From assembly GCA_021613535.1 (NCBI GenBank), contig CP075493.1, forward strand, positions 10,354,001 through 10,418,000: DNA of 64,000 bases. The letters run 5' to 3'. The position numbers and the translations under genes are program-made. Source of the DNA: Adineta vaga (taxonomy: Eukaryota; Animalia; Rotifera). A model generated the notes under the pieces. That model did not search any database, had not been told where the DNA came from, and saw only the letters and a program-made list of their open reading frames with translations. Numbering within the stretch: the stretch's first letter is position 1; every line of letters starts with the position of its first letter. Shown here one piece after another: positions 577 to 44,804 of this stretch.

Positions 577-3158
577 TGACATTCGATGGTTTTGGTAGGA
601 TGTGAAAGAGCAATAAAGGTTTAGAACTAATTGATATTCTTTATAGGAAACGGAACTCTTGTGACTTCACATATTCCAACAAGTTCAATTCGTCGACGAA
701 AAGAACAATTGAAAAAAGAAATTCAGGTAAGTTAGATTGAGAATATGTCAATGTACTTCATTTTGTTTGTACAAAAAAGTGACAGATGCGGTTTATGATA
801 GTTTTAATAATAAACATAAAACAGAACTTAGAAAAATATGACATTTTTTATCTACATGAAGAAAACTAATGCATGACTTACAACTTCTTCTTTTCTATTC
901 GTTCGCAATATTAATTATATGTTTTTATATTTAAAGGAAATCCATGAAAAAATTGCTCACTATGAAGTTGAAATGTCCATGATTCAATCTCAACATCCGA
1001 TTGAGTATGTAGAAAACTTGTGCGAATAATTTTCATTCTGATGTCGATAGGTTTCTTTTGATGAATGCAGATGAATAGAATATCAAAGCGTTACAATACG
1101 AGAAAAAAAACAGAAATTGGATGATATTGTACTACCTGAATATATTAGTCATTCGAATAATTGACGGAGAAAAAGAATCTAAAACGACCGAAGAAAATAA
1201 TTGAAGCGTCACATACGTCGTTCGTTTTTATTTATTCGAACTTGTATATCAATATTTTCTGTCTGTAATCAATAATTTCATCGAATGGACAAATCGATCG
1301 TTCGCAAGTCATCGAGGGCTTTAGAAACCGGCAAAATCTTTTCGCCAAGACTATCTGAAAGAGGTAAACAGCATGAGAGTCAAACAGAGTTTCATCATGG
1401 TTCGAAAATTGAACAAAAAATACAAAATCTTCGATTACGTATGCATGGACATCTACTACCACCGGAAGTTCCTGTTGTAGAACCGTTAAAACCAATGCGT
1501 TATGTACGACATTTTAATGTCTCAGTTTCATTAAAAAGATCGCGATTGTTAAGGTTTTTCGTTTGTTATATCAATGAATATATTTCACTCATTCTTTTTG
1601 CGTTTTTTTTCCTATTTAGTCGTCCGAATTCCGATTTAAAACAATGGTCGATTGGTAGAAGACAATTCAATGAAAATCCTAAACAAGTAATTTTGAAACA
1701 CCTATGTTTTTCATTTTAAAATGTGTGTTTCCCTAGGGAATTCAATGGCTTGTGGAGAATAATCTTCTTCAAAACACACCAGAGTCAGTGGCGACATTTC
1801 TATTCAATGAAACAGGATTGAGTAAACGTGCCATTGGAGAATATCTTGGCGAAAAGTATGTCTTTGAAACAATACTTATTCTTTTTATTTTATCTATGTT
1901 GTTGAATAGAGATGATTTTCATATTGACGTATTAAAACATTTTGCACGTCGACATGATTTTTTCACAGTAGATATCGTCGAAGCTCTTCGGTTTGTCGAT
2001 TCACTTTCTCTCTCTCTTTGATCAAATCTATTATTACAATAATACTTTTTTAGACGGTATTTATTTGCTTTTCTCCTTCCGGGTGAAGCACAAAAGATCG
2101 ATCGAATTATGGAAGCATTTTCAAAACGATATTATGAATGTAATCCAGATATATTTGTCAATGCTGGTAAGCTGAACCATTCGTTCTTCTAGAAATAAAA
2201 AAAAAAGTGTCTCTCATCATTTTGCTAATCATCTAGAAGTGTGTTTCATCCTATCCTATGCAATAATTATGCTGAATACATCACTGCATAATAAAAGTGC
2301 TCGTATGGGTGGACCGTTTACGTATGAAAAGTTTCTTAGTAGTTTAACTGAAGCTATTTCTCAACAACATATGCCTGACTCAACTACACTTAAAGTAAAA
2401 ATGATGAATAATGAATTTTGAAATGATTGAATTTTATTTTGTTTTTTCTTTTATAGAATATTTATGATCATATTAAAAATAATGAATTCAAATTTCCAGA
2501 TGATGGTGATATCGATATAATGAATGTTAGCATGAGAATTAAAGAAGGGTAAGAATATCAGAATGATGTTTTCAAATGATAAAGTAGAATTTTGTTTCAT
2601 AGTGGTTCAACCATCATTAAAGAAGGATGGTTATGGAAACAAGGTAAATTTAACGAAAGAAATGAGAAAAAAAACAAATTAATTGATAATTTAGGCGGAC
2701 TTGTCCGTAATTGGAAACGACGTTGGTTTGTTATAACAGATGGATGTTTGTTTTATTATGAATCTCGCACAGTAAATAATTATTGATTGTTTTTTTACTT
2801 GTAATTTACATACAAAAATTTTCTTAAATAGGAAGTTGATAATCCTCGTGGTATCGTATCATTAATTGATGTTGGTGTTCGAGAAATTGAAGATGATCGA
2901 CCAAAACAATTTTGTTTTGAACTTTTTCCACTTGCTGGCGAAAAAGTAAAATCAACGAAACCAGTATCTGGAGAAATAGGAAAAGTTACTGAAGGTAATC
3001 AATACTAATATTTCTCTTATTGCCAAACATTCATTGTTATTGCAGGTCATCATACAGTCTATCGAATGTCCGCACCATCTGACGATGAACGTAAAGATTG
3101 GATTCGTGCATTACGTATTGGCACTCAAAATGAATTACCTAAACAACGACTATCCTAG
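577..3158 (+). CDS. CYTH: Cytohesin-family Arf-GEF (coiled coil, Sec7, PH); multi-exon, two alternative N-termini
   Basis: Spliced exons give Sec7 motifs ([56 protein letters not shown]) and a PH domain ([21 protein letters not shown]...[18 protein letters not shown]). Stop TAG 3156-3158. Start 577 or alternative first exon at 1285. Confidence 0.9.
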
Positions 3159-3412
3159 TAGAATTTGTGGTGCTAGTAATTCTTTTTGTCATTCCATGCA
3201 TGTCTCTTCAATGGCTGATACGTAGTTTTATATATTTGCTCTCTTTTTTGTGTATACTTCTTTTTCTTTTACGACGCCCGGTGCGTTGTCTTCTTTTTGT
3301 GTATAGAACAGTGTATCTTTTCATGTTTTTAGTATAATGTGAACTAATAAAGAATTTCGAATTTGTTTTTCTTTTTCAGATCGATCGAAGAAGAAAAAAA
3401 AAGAAGCTAATC

Positions 3413-5106
3413 ATGCCATTGGAGAGTACGATTATCTGGTGAGGAGAATCGAACAAATCGAAGAGGAAAAGACGAGAATAATGTGTTGCTTTTTTAAATA
3501 TTTAGTATTGATAATAGTGATTATATGCGTGATGGAGATTTTATTCCTTCAAGAATGCAAGTACAACAAGATGCTGTATCATTAATTTTCCATGCTAAAA
3601 CAAGATCAAATCCGGAGAATAATGTTGGATTACTCACATTTTCCGAGTATGACAAGTATTATTAGTGATGATGATGATAATTAGTCATTTTTACCTTTTA
3701 GCGGACGAGTTGTTACTCAATTAACAAGTGATGTGGGCAAAGTCTTTTCAAAATTACATTTATTACCAATCGAAGGAAAAAATGATTTTTGTAAAGGAAT
3801 TAAAGTTGCTAATGTATGTGAACAATTTGTATTGATTAAACTGATATATTATTATTGACTTTTGTTTTCATAGTTAGCATTAAAACATCGACAAGGAAAG
3901 AATCATCGACCTCGTATTGTTGCTTTTATTGGTAGTCCATTAGAAGTGGATACAAATGAATTTACTAAATTAGCAAAACGATTAAAGAAAGAAAAAGTCT
4001 CCATTGATATTGTTATTTTCGGTGATGAAGTAAGATTATTCCTATACATATACTATTGTATTCGTATTAAATCATAATTTAGTCATCAAAAGAGAAATTC
4101 GAAGAATTTATAACAATTATTAATGGAAAAGAAAATACAAAGTAAGAGAATAGAATACATGTCACATAAGATTATTGAATATATTATGATTTAATCTAGT
4201 TCTCATTTAATATGTGTTCCATCCGGAGCAAATTTACCGGATACACTTATCAATACACCAATCATTCAAAGCGAAGATGGTTCAGGTATACCAGGTGGAT
4301 ATTCAGCAAGTGCTTTTGCATTTGGAATTAATCCAGAAGATGATCCTGAATTGGCTATGGTTTGTTCTTTTCTGGGATGTCTTATTTGATACAATGAGTT
4401 CTTTTTTTAAGGCACTTCGAATTTCTATGGAAGAACAAAGACGTGTTCAAGAAGCAGAAATAGGTCGTGGTTCAGCTAGTGAAACTACTGGTCCACAAAA
4501 TCCACCAACAAATTCAGGAACTTCAAGTAAATAGATGAAGATTTAGTTTTTCTTTGATTTCTGTAAATTATTTTTTCTATTATCTAGGTGCTAATCTTGA
4601 TGCACAAACAGGTTCAAATGAAATGGATGTTACTCGACTTACAGAAGAAGAGCAAATTGCATTGGCTATTCAAATGTCTATGTCACAAGCAGAAGGCGGT
4701 AGTATGTATTCTATTTCTTTTGCGAATTTTAGTTTTTAATTGATTGATTGATTGATAAATATTGTATTGAATTAATAGATACAAATGACGTTGAAATGAA
4801 AGAAGAACCTTCGAATACAGCCACAGCTGAAAAACCAGCAACAGTAAGTTGATTTTGTTTCTTGGATATCAATGTTCTATGTGGTTTTTGTGTCAGACAA
4901 CTGAAGGACAACAACAATCGAATCCTGATTCATTTGCTGCATCACTTAATGATCCGCAATTTTTACGCGATGTTCTTCGAGATTTACCAGGTGTCGATGT
5001 TGATAGCGAGGCTGTTCGAGCTGCTCTTGAACAAGTTCAACAACAGCCAAAAAAATCAGATGACAACGATGATGCAGCAGCGAAGAAGAAAAAGGATGGA
5101 AAATAA
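3413..5106 (+). CDS. PSMD4: 26S proteasome non-ATPase regulatory subunit 4 (Rpn10/S5a), multi-exon
   Basis: [25 protein letters not shown] (vWA), [22 protein letters not shown], UIMs [17 protein letters not shown] and [15 protein letters not shown]-terminal [16 protein letters not shown]. Confidence 0.95.
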
Positions 5107-34883: not shown

Positions 34884-37800
34884 ATGACGTGGATAATAGT
34901 TCTCCTCTTCTGCTTGGCTACAATATTTGAGCCTTTTCAGTTAGGTTTGTATACAGTGGAAAATATCAGTTTATAATTGACCGATTTCTTTATATTAGTG
35001 AATAGTTATTCACTGGCATCTTTTGGTATTAAATCGTACAGAATTATTCGTGCAATTCATGATGAAACAAAAACAGATAAACAAAGATATAAACGATCAA
35101 ATATCGAGAACAATGTACAAAGAATTCTTACACTAGAATTAGATCATAAGTAAGAGATTTCAAAGGTTGATTTAATATATCATGTTTATCGTGTCATGTT
35201 TAGAAATATTACATTAGTTTTAAAGAATACAAATGAATTCTTTACTACCAATGCAGACATACATTTCGGATCAGAAACTTTTCTTCCAATTAATTCGTCA
35301 ATACTTTATGAAGGCTATGTGTTAGGTAAAGAATTTTTCTAGTGATGCATCAACTATTTTCACTAGTATAAATGAACATCATTTCTTTTAGATCAACCTG
35401 ATACTTCATATGTTACCGGTGGATTTTATTCAAATTCGTTTGATGGTATCATAAAACTATCCAATGAAACTTGGCATATTGAACCAACACGGAAATATAA
35501 TATTTCACTATTTGATAATGGTTCATCGATCATTTACAATGCATTGGATGTTGATATGACAACATACAATGATAATGAAGCATTTCGATATAAACGATAT
35601 ATAAATGAAGAATCATCTTTTTGTGGACTTGATGATAAGAAAAAACGAGAACAAATGCGAGAAGAATCTGAACATTTAAATGAAGAGGAAGATAGCAGCT
35701 TTGCTTTTAAATCTCGATATAGACGATCAACAACGAATTCCGAACAAACCTGTTGTCATATTTATATACGTGTTGATCCAACTCTCTGGGATATTGTTTA
35801 TAAAAACGAAGGACTCAATGTATGAAGCAATTTTTTGCTAGAGCAACTAATTTAATTGTTTTCTGTCTAGGAAAAAGAAGCAACCATTCATGCACTAGTT
35901 ACATTTTTACATCGAACCGTGTCAGCTGCAAATGCACTCTATCGTTCTGTAAAATTTCAATCTAATAAAGATTATCTCTATCGTTTTACATTAAGAATAA
36001 AACGCATTCGAGTAAGGTCTTGTTTACTTGCCGATCTGAATTAATTTTATGTTTTGCTTTTCGTAGATTGTCACACCAGACGATTGTCAACAGAAGAATA
36101 TAAGTATCAGTGAAAAAAATATATGCCGACCCTATCTTGATTCGAATGTTTTCTTAACTTGGCATTCTGCAGAAAATTTTGCTGAATATTGTTTAGCATA
36201 TATCTTTTCGGCAAGAGATTTTGGTGATGGTACATTAGGTTTAGCATGGATGGGAAGTATTATGCCGAGTAAGTCTGCCATTTAAATTGTTTAACGATAT
36301 CAGTTTTTTTATTCTAGATAGTCGTGGAGGTATTTGTGAAAAACCGGCAAAAGATATTTACGAAGGACAACGGATTATTAAAACATTGAATACTGGAATG
36401 ATTACAATTATTAATCATAATACTCGAACATCAGCACTGATGACTGAATTAACATTTGCTCATGAAATTGGACATAGTCTAGGAGCAGAGGTCAGTTTTT
36501 CTGTTACTGTATCTCTTCTTCATTGTTTTTGTTTTCTAGCATGATGATGAGACATGTACAGGGATGATAATCATGGTCATTTTATCATGTATCGAAGAGC
36601 AACAACTGGTCTGGAAGAAAATAATAATAGATTTTCGAACTGTAGTTTAGAAAAAATGGGCTCTGTAGTGATTGCAGTTAAAAATAATTTACATGGTAAA
36701 GTCAATTGTTTAACAGGTATTTATTTCAGCACAAAAACAAAGATATTGCATTGAACTAATTTTTGTTGTATAGAATGTTCGCAAAGTGGATATTGTGGAA
36801 ATCGAAACGTTGAAGATGGTGAAGAATGTGATTGTGGATTTGTTTCGGAATGTACAGATCATTGTTGTTATCCAGCAGATGGACCAGATCCAAAATTAAG
36901 TTGTAAATTGAAGCCAGGTGCTCGATGCAGGTAATCAAAAAAACAAATCCCTTTTATTTTCATGAAATATTTCATATTTCAATTATTTTAGTCCATCGAG
37001 GGGACCCTGTTGTTCAGATCAATGTACATACCATTCAACAACACATATATGTCATAGAGATAGAGCAAGTCAAGATTGCATTGGCAATGTTCGATGCGAG
37101 TAAGATTCTTATTCTCAAAAAAACAATATGATTAGTTTGATTTTATTCGTAGTGGTATTCAATCAATATGTCCCCTCAATGATACACAATATTTCAAAGC
37201 AGTTGATACACCATGTAATCAATATACAGCATTGTGTGATCGAGGAGTATGGATGGATAAACAAATTTTATTTTATATCCATCGTATTGTTTTCGTTAGG
37301 AATGCAATAAAAGTATATGTACATTGATTGGAAAAACAGAATGTACATTAACGATACCAAATGTAGTAGAACCATTACGCCAACGTGGAATTGATCGAGA
37401 ATATTTATGTCATATTGGATGTTTTGAACGTAAGAACATTTATCGTAGATTTTCCCCCCAGAAAACAAAATATGTTTAATTTCCTTTCTAGCGCGAACAA
37501 ATTCATGTATTGATACACAAACTCTGGAAATGCCTAATAATCATAGTAAAACGGGATTTGGTTATAAACATCGACCAGGTTAATATATATAATCAATCTT
37601 TTTCATTTTATTTATATTGCTAGCTTGTAGGACATGCATGCGCTGGAACAGCTGGTTATTGTGATGTTTTTGGTAAATGTCGTGCCGTTGATGCTGAAGG
37701 TCCATTGACTCGATTGAAAAATATGCTACTTAGTGAAGCAAATATTCGCACACTGACTGAACTCACTCAGGTTTGTCAAATGGTAAACCAAAGTCTTTGA

Positions 37801-38147: not shown

Positions 38148-38660
38148 TTAATATTCCTGGTCAGAACAGTACTATTTCATATATGTTGATGGTGACTTCG
38201 ATCAGATTTATTTCTTCTCATTCATCTCTTTTTTCCATATAGTCAACTGGTGTTTTCTATTTTCTACGCATATACTTATTCACTTTTAAAGTGATACTTG
38301 GTTTTCGTTGTTTTTGTTTCGGTGTATTGTATCTTTACTCTATAATAATAATTGTTTTGAATAAACATCGACAAGCTGTAGTGCCTTGTAACATAACTAT
38401 TTCGAAATATCCCGCTAATAACAGTGATATATTTTGTTTTCAAATAAATGAACTTATGTATGAATGTAAATGTATACAGGAGACGATAAAAGACTATCTT
38501 TTAAAAAAAGCAAAATGTCTAGCAACACGAATTTGTGTCTGGTTGAACGAAAAGAATTAAAATGCCGTTAAAAAGAGAAACATGAATAACCACAAAGAAT
38601 AAATGCTACCAATGATGTAGCGTATAGAATTGGAATTCAAACTGTTTTGGAGATGAAAGT

Positions 38661-41600
38661 TTATGAATCTTTGGAATTCGTTGAATCACCACCAGGATTT
38701 TCGCTATCTAGAAAGAAAGGCAAAATAAATGAATGAATGATTGAAAATAATTCGCATAATAAAAGCATCTACATTTCCCGAAAATAATACAAAAGGAAAA
38801 GGGTGGAGGGAGATGGAGAAAATAAATGATATCCAACACCATGATTTAATGTGTAGAGAATACCTTCCATACGTGTTTTTTCTATGATTGATAGACGTTT
38901 TAAAATATCGTTTTGATCGAGAGGTGTATGTCGTTGTTCCGTATGATTATCATGAAGAAGACTGGAACGACGGTATTCAACATTAACAGTACTCGGTGCA
39001 CTGTTATGATGATGTTCATGATCTTCAGGTATTTCATCTTCATCATTGTAATCATTCGACATATATAATCCATCGAGATTATGTTCATTTGGCGAGAAAG
39101 TAAGTGTATTTGGACGAGGAAGTATTGATTGACTCTGACTACGTGTAATACTTAGTCCACGATCGATTGGTGGTATAAGATTTGAAGCGTTTCTAGATTT
39201 ATGCGAATGATCGACAGAAGAATTTCGAGAGATTCGATCTTGTTCGACGTCTTTTGTAGGTGTAGTATTTTCGTTTAAGTGAGTAGACGATTGAATCGTG
39301 TCATTATCTATTTGTGACGATGAATTTCTACGCTGATCTTCCTTATTCTCTAACATCAGCTGTGATTGACTTTGTTCATTAACAGGAGATACAGAGTGAC
39401 TTTTTCTTTCGATTTGCGCAACGATAGGAGAAGAGGATCCCTTTCTTTGCTGATTTTCTGTAACACTAGGGGAAGGGGATCGACTTCTTTCATCCGTTTG
39501 TTGATGAAGAGGAGACGAGGGTCGACTTCGCTCTTGAATAGTTTCAGTGACAGGTGACGGAGATCGACTTCTTTGTGGTTCCTGTTGAATAACCGGTGAG
39601 ATGGATCTATTACTTGTTTGAGTCTGCTGAAGAATAGGGGATGATGATCGACTGCTTTCTTGCGTCTGTTTCGTCACAGACGGTGATGGAGATCTAGTTC
39701 GATCTTGAATCTGTTCGGCTACGGATGATGAAGAAAGCCGACTTCTGTTTTCAATCTGCGCAACGATTGGAGACGGCGAGCGACTTCTTCGTTGTTCACC
39801 TTGAGTGATTGGTGATGGAGAGCGACTTCTTCGTTGTTCACCTTGAGTGATTGGTGATGGAGAGCGACTTCTTCGTTGTTCACCTTGAGTGATTGGTGAT
39901 GGAGAGCGACTTCTCCTTTCAGGCTGCTTAAGAATAGGAGATGGTGATCGACTTCTTTGTTGATCTTGATTAACGATTGGAGAGGGTGAGCGACTTATGT
40001 TTTCTATATGCGTGTCGATAGGAGAAGAAGATCGACTTCGATCTTGGGTTTGTTCGGTACTTAGCGATGCATGTTGATCTACTTCTGAATTTTGTTCGAC
40101 GATGGGAGATGGTGATCGACTTCTTTGTTGATCTTGATTAATAGGTGACGAAGAAGATCGACTTCTCCGTTGTTCCTGATTAACGATTGGCGAGGGTGAG
40201 CGACTTCTTTGTATATTCTGCTTTGTGTTAGGTGATGGAGATCTACTTCGTTTCTCAACTTGTCCGTCGACAAGTGACGATGATCGACTTTTTTGTTGGT
40301 CCTGATTAACGATTGGAGAGGGTGAGCGACTTCTCCGTTGTTCCTGATTAACGATTAGCGAGGGTGATCGACTTCTTTGTATATTCTGTTTCGTGCTAGG
40401 TGATGGCGATCTACTTCGTTTCTCGACTTGTCCATCGACAAGTGACGATGAACGACTTTTTTGTTGGTGCTGATTAACGATTGGAGAGGGTGAGCGACTT
40501 ATGTTTTCTATATGCGTGTCGATAGGAGAAGAAGATCGACTTCGATCTTGGGTTTGTTCAGTATTTAGCGATGCATGTTGATTTACTTCTGAATTTTGTT
40601 CGACATTAGGTGATGGTGATCGACTTCTTTGTATATTCTGTTTTGTGCTAGGTGATGGCGATCTACTTCGTTTCTCGACTTGTCCGTCGACAACTGACGA
40701 TGAACGACTTTTTTGTTGATCTTGATTAATAAGTGGCGAAGAAGATCGACTTCTCCGTTGTTCCTGATTAACGATTAGCGAGGGTGAGCGACTTCTTTTT
40801 TCGATCTGCGCGCTGATAGGAGAAGAAGATCGACTTCGTTCTTGGGTTTGTTCAGTATTTAGTGATGCATGTCGATTTACTTCTGAATTTTGTTCGACAT
40901 AAGGTGATGGTGATTGGCTTCTTTGTATATTCTGCTTTGTGTTAGGTGATGGAGATCTACTTCGTTTCACAACCTGTCCATCGACAAGTGACGATGAACG
41001 ACTTTTTTGTTGATCTTGATTAACGATTGGCGAGGGTGAGTGACTTCTTTTTTCGACCTCCGTGTTGATAGGAGAAGAAGACTGACTTCGATGTTGAGCT
41101 TGTTCAGTACTTAGCGATGCATGTTGATCTCCTTCCGAATTTTGTTCGACAATGGGGGATGGTGATCGACTTCTTTGTTGATCTTGATTAATAGGTGACG
41201 AAGAAGATCGACTTCTCCGTTGTTCCTGATTAACGATTGGCGAGGGTGAGCGACTTCTTTTTTCTATATGCGTGTCGATAGGAGAAGAAGATCGACTTCC
41301 TTCTTGGGTTTGTTCAGTATTTAGCGATACATGCTGATTTACTTCTGAATTTTGTTCGACATAAGGTGATGGTGATTGGCTTCTTTGTATATTCTGTTTT
41401 GTGTTAGGTGATGGAGATCTGCTTCGTTTCTCAACCTGTCCATCGACAAGTGACGATGAACGACTTTTTTGTTGGTCCTGATTAACGATTGGCGAGGGTG
41501 AGTGACTTCTTTTTTCGACCTCCGTGTTGATAGGAGAAGAAGATCGGCTTCGAACTTGAGTTTGTTCAGTAATTAGTGATGCATGTTGATCTACTTCTGA

Positions 41601-44600
41601 AGTTTGTTCGACATTAGGTGATGGTGATCTATTTCGTTTCTCAACCTGTCCGTCGACACGTGACGATGAACGACTTCTTTGTTGACCCTGATTAACAGAT
41701 GGTGAAGGGGATCTACTTCGGTTTTCGGTTTTTTCAGTAGAAGATGACGGTATTCGACTGATTCGTTGTGTTTGTTCGGAGTTAAATGATGGAGACTGAC
41801 TTCGATCTTGTGTTTGTTCAGTACTAACTGATGTGAATTGATCCACTACGGATTCTTGCTCGATAATAGGCGATGAAGTTCGACTTCTGCTTGCGATCTG
41901 CTCAGTGATAGGTAGAGCAGTACTTGTTTCGTGCGAATCAAATTTGATATCACCAGTATCATGTGTAACCGACTCATCGATAAGCGAATTTTGTTGATTA
42001 TCATCTGTCATCAGAGCTTTGATTTGTAGTTCGTTTGTTGGAGATGGTGAACGTTGTTCAGAAGTAGATGAGTTAACAGAATTCTGATTATTATCTGTGC
42101 TAGAAAGTAGTAGCGCATGATCCTGATGGTTGTGTTCATCATTATTTGCACTCGTTAGTGCTATGAAAGTCGAAGGTGACTTTCGATTTTCTATTGCGTT
42201 ATCAACTTCTTCAATGCGAGCAGATAATGGATGGTTACTCTCCTGATCAACGGTAGTAGGTAATGAGGGTTGTCTATCTGGTTGTTGAGTTGATAGTATA
42301 TCCTCTTTCTGTTGCTGTAATTCATTCAATACGAAACTTCCCGATCGAGATCGAACAGATGAATTTATCATACTGTTTCGACGGCTTGAAATCGGAGATT
42401 TCGGTAAATTAATCTGCTGTTCTTCATCTTTATTGTTGATTATACTGTTGTCAGTAGTGGATATTTTATTATCATCCATCATGAGCGGTGAAGAAGCGGA
42501 TTTTCGAGAAATTAAAACGTCACCGAAAGGGTTGGTGTGGAGGTCATTTTCTGGTAATACTTGTGTCACGTACGAATCTTTCTCAATGATCGATGATGAT
42601 CGAGAAAGAGAATTACTTAGTTCGCTATTCTGTGAATCTATATTCGTCAGAGGTTCATTCGAAGGTGTTCGAACACCTGTCGGTGAAATCGATGTAGTGT
42701 CTGTTTTATTTTGTTGTTCAACAACAGGTGATAAAAGTCTAGGTGGTGATTCGACATTCAGTGGAGAAGAAAATGGTTTATGCGATGTTGGTGTTCTTGT
42801 ACGACCCGGTGGTGGTGTAACAGGAAATGTTAAAGGATGTTGCTGTAAACGTTTTGATGAAGGTGTTGTAGGAGATTGACTTGCTGGAAGAAGATGAGAG
42901 GATATCGTTTGATTCTTTCTCAGACTCTCACTCTTCTCAACTATCAATATTGAAGAAAAAAAAACAACTACTTACTTTGACGTTGAGCTACTGGTGTATT
43001 GCTGCCAGTTGGAGTGACTGCACCACCTGATTTTCTCGTTAGAAGACTGTTAAAGAAATTGGCTAATGCACCTTCGTTTGCTGCTGCAGTTGCACTGCCA
43101 GGTGTTGTACTCTGCAAAGAAAAACAACCTTATTTAGATTTCGACAAACTACAATTTATTTTTACTGGTTGATTTCGTGGTCGTCCAGCAACGGATGGTG
43201 TTTGTGAACCAACAGCACTACTCACACCTGATGCACGCGTCAATACAGGTGTTGCTGTTTCATCCTATGAAAAACTTCATTATAAAAAAAGTAGTTTATT
43301 CACACATCAACTCACTGCTCTGCCAGGCGATGCAGCTCGATTCAGTGTTAATTGAAGTTTTGATAAAAATTCTTGATCATCTTCAGCTGCAACAATTTCA
43401 TTATCACGTTGTAGTGGCTAGAGTAATGATCATTACGATAGTAATTATATAAAGAAATATGAAACCTTACTCTTCGAATAACAGGTTTGACAAAAACATC
43501 TGAATAATTATCTGTTGATTTCAATCGATGCAGATTTTCTAATAGGATATCAGCTTTCTTTGGATTATCCCAACCAGCTGGTATAAAGATTGCGTCACGT
43601 TCAACAATCGCAGCTGTTGATGTAAATGGATAACCATAACATTTATGAACAATATATTTATATAATTTATCAATATTTTTTTTCTCTTTCACAGATGTAT
43701 AAAATAAAGCAGCACCATCTAAATAATCAAAATTACATGCCTTTGAAATAGTAGCTCGTCCGCATAGTTTACTTACATTCTAAACAAAACTTTCGTAAAT
43801 GATGTTGCATAAAATCGAAATATTCATCTTTATAATCATTTTCTTTTTCTAATGTTGGCATGGCATCACACTAAAAGAAAAGAAAAGAAATGAATTATAT
43901 TGACTAGCAGAGTAAATCTATTCTACTTTGGTAATAACAACAATAACTGTAATACCAAGTGATTTGGTTAGTACACCATCGGCAAGTGGTAGAACAACTT
44001 GTTCTTCACCATTCGTCGTTGGACTTAATGTTGATGTTGATGCCAGAGAAACTGATGAAATAGAATTTGGAACACGACTACCACCTGTACCACTTTTAAG
44101 TGTTGTCGACGATGTCGATGATGTTAACATTATTGATGTATCATTCGGTTCAACATAATGTTGAAATTCATATTGAAGACGATCACGCATGTCTCGTAAA
44201 CGTATTGGATCAATTTTTAATCGATCAATATGTTCTTCGATCAATGCTGTCCATTTCTTTAATGTTGATAATAATGACCATGGATGAGTCATACTTGCAA
44301 CAAGAATTAAAATCGTATTCTCTAATGTATCAGATTTAATGGCAAATTTTAATAGAGGAGCAGAACATGCGACATCACCATCAAGAATCCATACACCGAG
44401 TTTGGGTGTATCTATTGAAATGAAATAATAAGAAATAAGGTACATCTCTGACAGAAAAAGAACGACGATGAAATAGATTACCATCTCGATCATCATCTTT
44501 AACATCGATATAATGATATTCAAGACCAGCACCTCGTTTAGGATCATCATTGCCTTGTAATTTTGCTACTAATGTTGTTCGACCACTTTCATTATCACCA

Positions 44601-44804
44601 AGAACTACTAGAGATTTCGTTGCTGGTGCTTTCTTTGTCGATGATTTGACATCACGTAATATCGAAGCCCTATTTAGAATAAATACAATTTTGGAATCTA
44701 ACAAATATCAATCGTTAATCTCACCAGATACTTGGTTTTTCTTCAGCATCAGTTCCATTCTCAACGGTTGAATGAGGTTCGTTAACGATGGCTTGCTTTG
44801 TCAT
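38661..44804 (-). CDS. DYNC1LI: Cytoplasmic dynein 1 light intermediate chain, with putative giant RS-repeat cassette exon
   Basis: [50 protein letters not shown], adaptor-binding helix [12 protein letters not shown]. Donor GTAAGT at 42975. Terminal exon 38707-38661 is in the same phase. Confidence 0.85.
39400..41900 (-). repeat. Coding tandem repeat, ~42 nt/14 aa RSRSPSP units with higher-order duplications
   Basis: Dozens of R-S-R-S-[PS]-S-P units in the 1392-aa ORF; near-perfect 42-nt triplication at ~39781-39912 ([14 protein letters not shown]); recurring multi-unit blocks. Confidence 0.95.

Follow-up and report, generated by a model that had tools for sequence, protein, structure and literature searches.

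A giant frame-preserving cassette exon in a dynein light intermediate chain gene of the bdelloid rotifer Adineta vaga

The bdelloid rotifer Adineta vaga has two genes for the light intermediate chain (LIC) of cytoplasmic dynein, and one of them contains an exon of 4,020 nt that is skipped in most transcripts and included in a minority, with the reading frame kept in both cases. This LIC gene occupies positions 38661-44804 of the minus strand in the window, that is, the whole stretch of 64,000 nt analyzed here (contig CP075493.1 of assembly GCA_021613535.1, positions 10,354,001 to 10,418,000); coordinates below are those of the window unless another locus is named. We put the probability that one bdelloid LIC paralogue has a conserved giant exon, used alternatively and without effect on the frame, at 0.85-0.9, and, at about 0.85, an alternatively used giant LIC exon is also the best explanation of the locus as a whole. 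Cytoplasmic dynein contacts its cargo adaptors through the LIC tail, and the exon would encode a tail of 1,000-2,000 residues that is rich in serine and intrinsically disordered.

The exons were searched one by one against Pfam, and three of them matched PF05783 (DLIC) with E values of 3e-33, 5e-35 and 7.5e-07; the corresponding scores (115.8, 121.7 and 28.8 bits) exceed the curated cut-off of 19.7 and place the protein in the DLIC family. The adaptor-binding helix 1 (FFNSLL motif), which aligns with the motif in mollusc, brachiopod, arthropod, and vertebrate LICs, is encoded in the exon at 43111-42976. This exon ends in ...AQRQ plus one base, A, and is followed by a GTAAGT donor at 42976/42975. 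The gene is built as follows.

42976..44804, minus strand: constitutive exons 1-8, placed by the DLIC match, RNA junctions, and reading of the sequence
44804-44725 and 44669-44482, minus strand: exons 1 and 2, boundaries read from the sequence
44411-43927 and 43870-43777, minus strand: exons 3 and 4, 3'/5' limits partly from RNA (43718>43777), the others read as for exons 1 and 2
43718-43471 and 43417-43315, minus strand: exons 5 and 6, with junctions 43718>43777, 43417>43471, and 43263>43315 in RNA
43263-43166 and 43111-42976, minus strand: exons 7 and 8, with junction 43111>43166 in RNA; exon 8 ends in phase 1
42884..42975, minus strand: upstream flanking intron, 92 nt, GTAAGT...CCAG, RNA junction 42976>42883
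38864..42883, minus strand: giant cassette exon, 4,020 nt, 1,340 codons, phase 1 at both ends, stop-free
38708..38863, minus strand: downstream flanking intron, 156 nt, GTATTC...TCTAG, RNA junction 38864>38707
38661..38707, minus strand: terminal coding exon, 47 nt, encoding N or D plus 14 residues and then TAA; common to both isoforms

The alternative use of the exon is seen in contigs from four public sequencing runs, which were placed on positions 38500-44400. The constitutive introns 43111>43166, 43263>43315, 43417>43471, and 43718>43777 were removed in all four runs, and the runs are therefore RNA. The junction that skips the exon, 42976>38707 (4,268 nt), was present in every run (depths 23.5, 63.7, 6.1, and 101) and represents the dominant form. 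Inclusion was observed on both sides of the exon: the junction 42976>42883, which removes the 92-nt intron, occurs in X1 (depth 4.2) and X2 (9.2), and the junction 38864>38707, which removes the 156-nt intron, in X1 only (6.8). The terminal exon is thus joined to 42976 in four of four runs and to 38864 in one. These three junctions are all GT..AG on the minus strand, and together, as a skip plus both sides of inclusion, they identify a cassette exon. The entire giant exon is covered by contigs at about 1/5 to 1/10 of the depth of the LIC exons, and the depth of the junction contigs, a rough measure, puts inclusion at about 13-15%, or roughly one transcript in seven.

Most of this structure had been proposed in a sequence-only reading of the window. 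The open reading frame (ORF) of 1392 aa, the GTAAGT donor after AQRQ, two acceptors behind it, the donor after 38864, and the terminal exon were all found where that reading had placed them. It had also proposed that the exon is a frame-preserving cassette giving a LIC of normal or giant size, which is borne out by the RNA junctions for the skip and for both sides of inclusion, and by orthologues in which the exon has a length divisible by three and phase 1 at both ends. The three junctions named above had been predicted and were all recovered; a fourth, 42976>42940, was not seen in the RNA contigs. The exon is not always skipped either, as the inclusion junctions in X1 and X2 demonstrate. The two proposed acceptors, AG at 42942-41 and CAG at 42885-84, both exist in the sequence, but only the 92-nt intron that ends at the second appears in RNA. 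The 35-nt intron that would end at the first was rejected: no run contains its junction, and the orthologous gene models use the CAG acceptor. Of the two exon lengths suggested, 4020 nt (a multiple of three) stands, and 4077 nt, which would need the 35-nt intron, does not.

By coordinate arithmetic on the summed exon lengths, the skipped form has 1,479 coding nt (492 aa) and the included form 5,499 nt (1,832 aa). At the point of joining to the terminal exon, skipping gives the residue N and inclusion the residue D. The frame is maintained with the exon in or out, as its length is a multiple of three and the phase is the same on both sides, in three species (4,020, 5,370, and 6,288 nt). If the upstream intron is left unspliced, the frame ends at the TAG at 42970-42968. 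The 1392-aa open frame extends over 38769..42947 of the minus strand; at the base composition of the exon, the chance of 1339 stop-free codons is 4e-34, and 46 and 111 stops interrupt the two remaining frames of that strand. Variants found among the RNA contigs comprised 15 synonymous and 20 non-synonymous changes and no stops.

A word-based search with the exon revealed DLIC proteins of 1,900-2,600 aa in A. steineri, Rotaria socialis, and R. magnacalcarata, as well as partial giant DLIC models in R. sordida and Rotaria sp. Silwood1/2. The exon measures 5,370 nt (1,790 codons) in A. steineri and 6,288 nt (2,096 codons) in R. socialis; each is open, has a length divisible by three, and has phase 1 at each end. 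The giant models share with the A. vaga RNA the exact junction RQ|T|SQSPTTPSS and the end ...EKSR.E|DN.N..DST.SK.., and the tail encoded by the terminal exon also closes the A. steineri and Rotaria models. In two further divergent lineages, a giant ORF lies directly downstream of DLIC ORFs, so that in all five loci examined the giant frame stands directly behind the DLIC exons. In one divergent lineage (L007:3564-8471), the giant region was called as two ORFs (467 and 1156 aa) about 30 nt apart, which could be due to an additional intron, to a stop codon, or to an error in the assembly. Since the exon is present in both Adineta and Rotaria, it is at least as old as their split.

Outside the bdelloids, a search for DLIC proteins longer than 1,255 aa returned a single entry, a model of 1667 aa from the mite Dermatophagoides farinae (P0021). 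It carries ABC-transporter and SMC-type ATPase domains and probably results from the merging of gene models, not from a true giant LIC. In this search the arrangement was found only in bdelloid rotifers. The neighborhood of the locus also appears syntenic among A. vaga, A. steineri, and R. socialis, as had been suggested for other rotifers to check: in the two relatives, an ADAM10-type reprolysin/disintegrin gene lies downstream of the giant-exon LIC gene and convergent with it, and at this place the window carries a plus-strand ORF fragment (36287-36544) with the zinc-protease motif HEIGHSLG.

When the orthologous exons are aligned, three zones can be distinguished: a conserved block at each end and, between them, a long variable middle that in A. 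vaga holds an array of arginine/serine (RS) repeats.

42684..42881, minus strand: conserved N-block, 66 aa, rich in serine/threonine-proline (S/T-P), first part of the exon
39447..41720, minus strand: RS repeat array, about 54 units of 14 aa (RSRSPSP-I-V-x-Q-x-x-Q), from Tandem Repeats Finder and core spacing
38865..39167, minus strand: conserved C-block, 101 aa, ending in ...DPNDI.KRLSIVEKSR.E.
38868..38915, minus strand: predicted amphipathic helix, 16 residues at the very end of the giant exon, from AlphaFold2

The N-block is the best-conserved part of the exon, with a mean column identity of 75% across 10 lineages (alignment A6) and a dN/dS of 0.15 against A. steineri. The C-block has a mean column identity of 68% over 19 lineages (68-75% across alignments A1 and A3) and a dN/dS of 0.29, with synonymous sites near saturation (dS 1.2); RP, DGL, and a D are invariant in it, and F.PN, LDGLY, and SA..T nearly so. 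AlphaFold2, run on alignment A3 (19 sequences), predicts a helix at C-block residues 85-100 with a predicted local distance difference test score (pLDDT) of about 73, and no regular structure in the rest of the block. A profile of the C-block compared with 1.84 billion representative proteins gave 17 matches (clusters at 50% identity), and the 13 whose sequences were read are all pieces of this giant exon. The middle zone, of 1,000-1,900 residues, is serine-rich, poor in hydrophobic residues, and fast-evolving. Depending on the lineage, it holds between 6 and 147 RS/SR dipeptides, and its net charge varies from +20 in A. vaga to -157 in R. socialis. What is conserved across lineages is the giant size, the serine-rich predicted disorder, and the two end blocks, and not the RS content or the charge. 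No exon contains a Pfam family other than DLIC, nor an RRM or PWI domain, and searches of the N-block and C-block against Pfam gave nothing relevant even at E<=10.

The order of these zones bears on whether the frame belongs to the LIC gene at all. A separate gene nested downstream of the LIC gene, with a promoter of its own and with the junction contigs resulting from read-through or chimeric splicing, would agree with an RNA depth 5-10 times lower over the exon than over the LIC exons, and prokaryote-style gene callers do give a stand-alone ORF in several assemblies (P0003, P0005, and P0012). The sequence-only reading had noted that the frame has no ATG start of its own, and indeed the first in-frame Met comes only at exon residue 134 in A. 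vaga, 220 in A. steineri, and 81 in R. socialis, in all three cases behind the N-block. Because the first Met lies behind the 66 best-conserved residues, which evolve at a dN/dS of only 0.15, translation must enter from the LIC exon, and on the frames of these three species independent translation of the conserved start of the exon can be considered ruled out. The absence of a start codon ahead of the N-block weakens the idea of a separate gene. Moreover, the frame opens at a conserved phase-1 acceptor and closes at a phase-1 donor, both of which are used, its position directly behind the DLIC exons holds in 5/5 loci, and no protein of a different build was found that has the C-block by itself or together with another partner. 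We regard a nested gene as extremely improbable.

It is also conceivable that the exon represents splicing noise or an unproductive regulatory transcript, and that only the 492-aa protein matters. Inclusion is indeed the minor form, the middle of the exon evolves fast, with repeats that turn over and a charge that flips between lineages, and about 57% of the sampled variants are non-synonymous. This explanation loses weight because the exon is conserved: frames of 1,340, 1,790, and 2,096 codons have been kept open in genera near synonymous saturation at the C-block, both end blocks are under purifying selection, and 17 of 17 clusters at 50% identity keep the C-block. In addition, the exon introduces no premature stop, and it is therefore not a poison exon. 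Noise as the whole explanation seems very improbable to us.

Conserved flanking introns are the usual mark of regulated exons, and the alternatively used giant exon has them. Matches between A. vaga and A. steineri or R. socialis were compared with those of shuffled sequences: the upstream flanking intron gave z values of 4.6 and 3.1 and the downstream one 5.7 and 3.4, whereas three constitutive introns of the same gene were not conserved (z -1.4 to 0.5). Two blocks of nucleotides are kept between Adineta and Rotaria in the downstream intron (window 38708-38863; L005:10254-10430; L006:11205-11351), namely GTAYTYTCTACACAT...TCAYGGTGWTGGA and, near the acceptor, GGGAA..T...TGC.TTTAT; both are candidates for elements that control giant-exon splicing. 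A stretch resembling a peptide, GILYTLNNGD.F.VL, recurs among retained-intron ORF models. An alternative coding C-terminus arising by retention of this intron was nevertheless rejected, given a 14-nt gap in A. vaga and stop positions that differ; because of this gap, it is the nucleotides that are conserved rather than a reading frame. Pairing of the purine-rich upstream intron with the pyrimidine-rich downstream intron was also considered as a mechanism of skipping and was not convincing (duplex z of -2.5, -0.7, and -1.4 against shuffles).

The second LIC gene of A. vaga provides a natural comparison. It is 76% identical to the first over the 162-aa exon used as query and has the same phase-1 donor after ...PPPRQ, which is followed by a 769-nt intron leading straight to small terminal exons; the region after this donor contains no large open frame. 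Its tail consists of two micro-exons, NTDNSVVDSTNQ and NSQKQQEQS followed by a stop (G000:C4:1457500-1467499, L004 ~2650-3550), a diverged version of the tail that closes the giant models. The 769-nt intron is long relative to the ~50-nt introns of this genome and lies exactly at the position of the giant exon. A relic of the giant exon in it was searched for and rejected, with nothing by tblastn and only noise by blastn. Short LICs of about 500 aa were found in A. steineri, A. ricciae, A. vaga (P0051, I4U23_017581), R. sordida, and Rotaria sp. Silwood1, and a second LIC ohnolog without the giant exon exists in every bdelloid examined. In the tree, the short copies group together in a single clade (support 85/96), and the giant copies fall outside it without forming a resolved group. 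Since the end modules and the flanking splicing elements are conserved and the paralogue has kept the short form, the addition is under selection.

In A. vaga, the RS repeats of the exon are confined to about aa 388-1146 of its 1340 codons. Between 39762 and 41802, Tandem Repeats Finder detected a repeat of 42 nt as well as larger units of 252, 294, and 462 nt, which correspond to 84-154 aa in the protein, and every spacing between the cores of the repeat units is a multiple of 14 aa. The exon contains 135 RS/SR dipeptides, 30 RSRS, and 19 exact RSRSPSP in 1,339 residues. A dispersed repeat family was rejected as its source, as the repeat type matches only inside this exon: nothing was detected elsewhere in the 100.8-Mb genome (6 contigs) at E<=1e-5.

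These features raise the question of whether the RS array itself is functional, either as an RS domain coupling dynein to RNA or ribonucleoprotein (RNP) cargo, SR networks, or condensates, or as a microtubule tether like the basic region of p150Glued. The regularity of the array (135 dipeptides, 19 RSRSPSP, ~54 units of 14 aa), its composition in A. vaga (92 R and 23 K against 75 D/E), and the presence of RS arrays in A. steineri and several Rotaria are in line with such a role. Yet orthologues poor in RS exist, and this is what weakens it: P0034 has 6 RS/SR dipeptides, and P0029 and P0033 are also low, all with the giant size and both end blocks. The net charge of the middle region spans +20 to -157, and Pfam finds no RRM or other RNA-binding domain. 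A function for the RS array as such is, in our opinion, distinctly unlikely, and a basic microtubule-binding spacer was rejected, the charge not being conserved between lineages. We see the RS repeats instead as a probable lineage-specific filling of the spacer and not as its conserved core. The term RS-repeat exon, under which the locus had been described in the sequence-only reading, is apt for A. vaga and some relatives, but it does not name what is conserved, with RS dipeptides varying from 6 to 147 between lineages.

To our knowledge, the LIC tail in every system studied so far is a short disordered segment with two helices. In molluscs, annelids, brachiopods, priapulids, arthropods, and vertebrates, we found helix 1, a linker of 20-30 aa, helix 2 (AAELDRMTR), and a short tail. 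Helix 2 is not recognizable in either A. vaga isoform. The motif is also missing from the short bdelloid LICs (P0045-P0051) and from the skipped isoform, unlike in the other animals examined (P0054-P0156). In PMC13635249 and PMC6336354, the vertebrate LIC tail is described as mostly disordered, helices 1 and 2 being its only helical elements, and phosphorylation and Pin1 are named as its regulators. Compared with the canonical LICs (DYNC1LI1/2), A. vaga has the same Ras-like DLIC domain, helix 1, and a disordered S/T-P-rich tail; besides helix 2, the difference lies in size, as canonical LICs have about 450-530 aa, whereas the A. vaga tail can be extended by 1,340 residues and those of its relatives by 1,790-2,100.

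As to the origin of the alternatively used giant exon, and compatible with that explanation, it may be an ancestral LIC tail exon that was expanded by repeats, in which case its terminal helix would be a diverged helix 2, which was lost from both the skipped isoform and the short ohnolog. The order of elements in other animals, the lack of helix 2 in the short bdelloid forms, and the position of the predicted terminal helix, just before the short tail, agree with this origin. In P0001, the Pfam DLIC match extends 12 residues into the exon, and optional inserts occur at the same position in oyster LICs. Against it, comparison of the C-block and N-block with animal LIC tails by hhalign gave a probability of <=0.2%, and helix-2 homology of the C-block and LIC-tail homology of the N-block were rejected on that basis; the Pfam DLIC model does not match the C-block even at E<=10, and the 769-nt intron of the short ohnolog holds no relic of the exon. 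We consider this origin possible but rather unlikely. The oyster inserts are seen in the predicted Crassostrea virginica LIC isoforms X2, X6, X9, and X10, which have optional sequence between helix 1 and the C-terminal end. These isoforms (P0060, P0064, P0093, and P0094) measure 482-526 aa, and in P0060 the insert, placed after helix 1 and before helix 2, amounts to a few dozen residues, as opposed to more than 1,000 in bdelloids, and helix 2 is kept. This suggests that the site after helix 1 may be a recurrent place for alternative tail exons.

Several points weigh against an alternatively used giant LIC exon as we describe it. Contig depth is a poor gauge of isoform ratio. The contigs break in the repeats, and full-length inclusion is pieced together from two separate junctions, with no contig spanning both. 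The 3' junction of the exon comes from one run alone, and one X13 contig is unspliced across the 156-nt intron. The giant LIC of 1,832 aa is a predicted protein whose support is at the RNA level. Skipping was observed in A. vaga alone, and its extension to the other species is drawn from an exon length divisible by three and from intron conservation. Finally, the N-block and C-block have no profile similarity to the helix-2 region of animal LICs or to any Pfam family. As for the unspliced X13 contig, it is 919 nt long (window 38692-39609), with 12 differences from the window and an extra T behind 38781; it could derive from the other haplotype, from another strain, or from a retained-intron transcript ending in ...FREM and a stop.

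Two known systems resemble the locus in part. The first is that of the giant-exon ankyrins (480-kDa ankyrin-G and 440-kDa ankyrin-B), which have a normal and a giant isoform and whose giant exons are vertebrate and neuron-specific; other cytoskeletal proteins also have giant optional exons. The ankyrins too have one huge, frame-preserving, optional exon that encodes an extended, mostly unstructured insert between conserved parts, and the ankyrin-B giant exon is mentioned in a passage of PMC4274267. The ankyrins belong to another protein family and another lineage, the giant LIC exon has no Pfam hit, and all relatives found are bdelloid LIC exons; homology to the ankyrin inserts was thus not found, and the likeness is one of mode of construction only. 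The second system is that of SR and SR-related proteins (for example, SRRM1/SRRM2-type RS/SP repeats), which share with the A. vaga exon a dense array of RS/SR with SP (RSRSPSP). Sequences of this kind are expected substrates of SRPK/CLK-type kinases. Of the hallmarks of SR proteins, the array has the RS domain but neither an RNA-recognition motif nor a PWI domain; it sits on a motor subunit and is not conserved in the orthologues, and the likeness is one of composition, not of homology.

What the giant isoform does can be proposed only tentatively. The suggestion that it forms a long disordered tether with a conserved putative binding module behind helix 1, in amounts set by splicing, seems plausible to us, although somewhat short of an even chance. 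The N-block, directly behind helix 1, may act as a phospho-regulatory site, like the S/T-P sites of vertebrate LIC tails, and the C-block, with its short linear motifs and terminal amphipathic helix, may be a site for partner binding. Through the giant isoform, some dynein complexes would then acquire a long flexible tether with an extra binding module, and alternative splicing through the conserved intronic elements would set the share of complexes that carry it. In A. vaga, the RS repeats would make the tether a multi-site substrate for SRPK/CLK-type and proline-directed kinases. A bolder version, in which the C-block and its helix bind a bdelloid-specific partner or cargo directly, on a phospho-tunable tether, and so bypass or modify the system of helix 1 and adaptors, is unlikely. 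If it were true, part of a cargo adaptor or anchor would be built into the dynein motor itself, and splicing would set the fraction of such motors by tissue or state, for example, in syncytial tissues, in the germline, or at entry into and exit from desiccation.

A literature search returned no paper in which a dynein LIC is connected to bdelloids or to a giant exon. The view in the sequence-only reading that no equivalent had been described holds in this sense, but giant DLIC models of 1,900-2,600 aa are already in databases. The giant LIC thus seems undescribed rather than unseen, as automatic gene models are publicly available; in public bdelloid annotations the giant LIC and the short one are both present but are not connected as two isoforms of a single gene. 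The locus provides a clean non-vertebrate example of a giant optional exon, and does so in a genome where introns otherwise measure about 50 nt. A LIC gene able to add 1,300-2,100 residues behind helix 1 would amount to a natural experiment in rebuilding the interface between motor and cargo.

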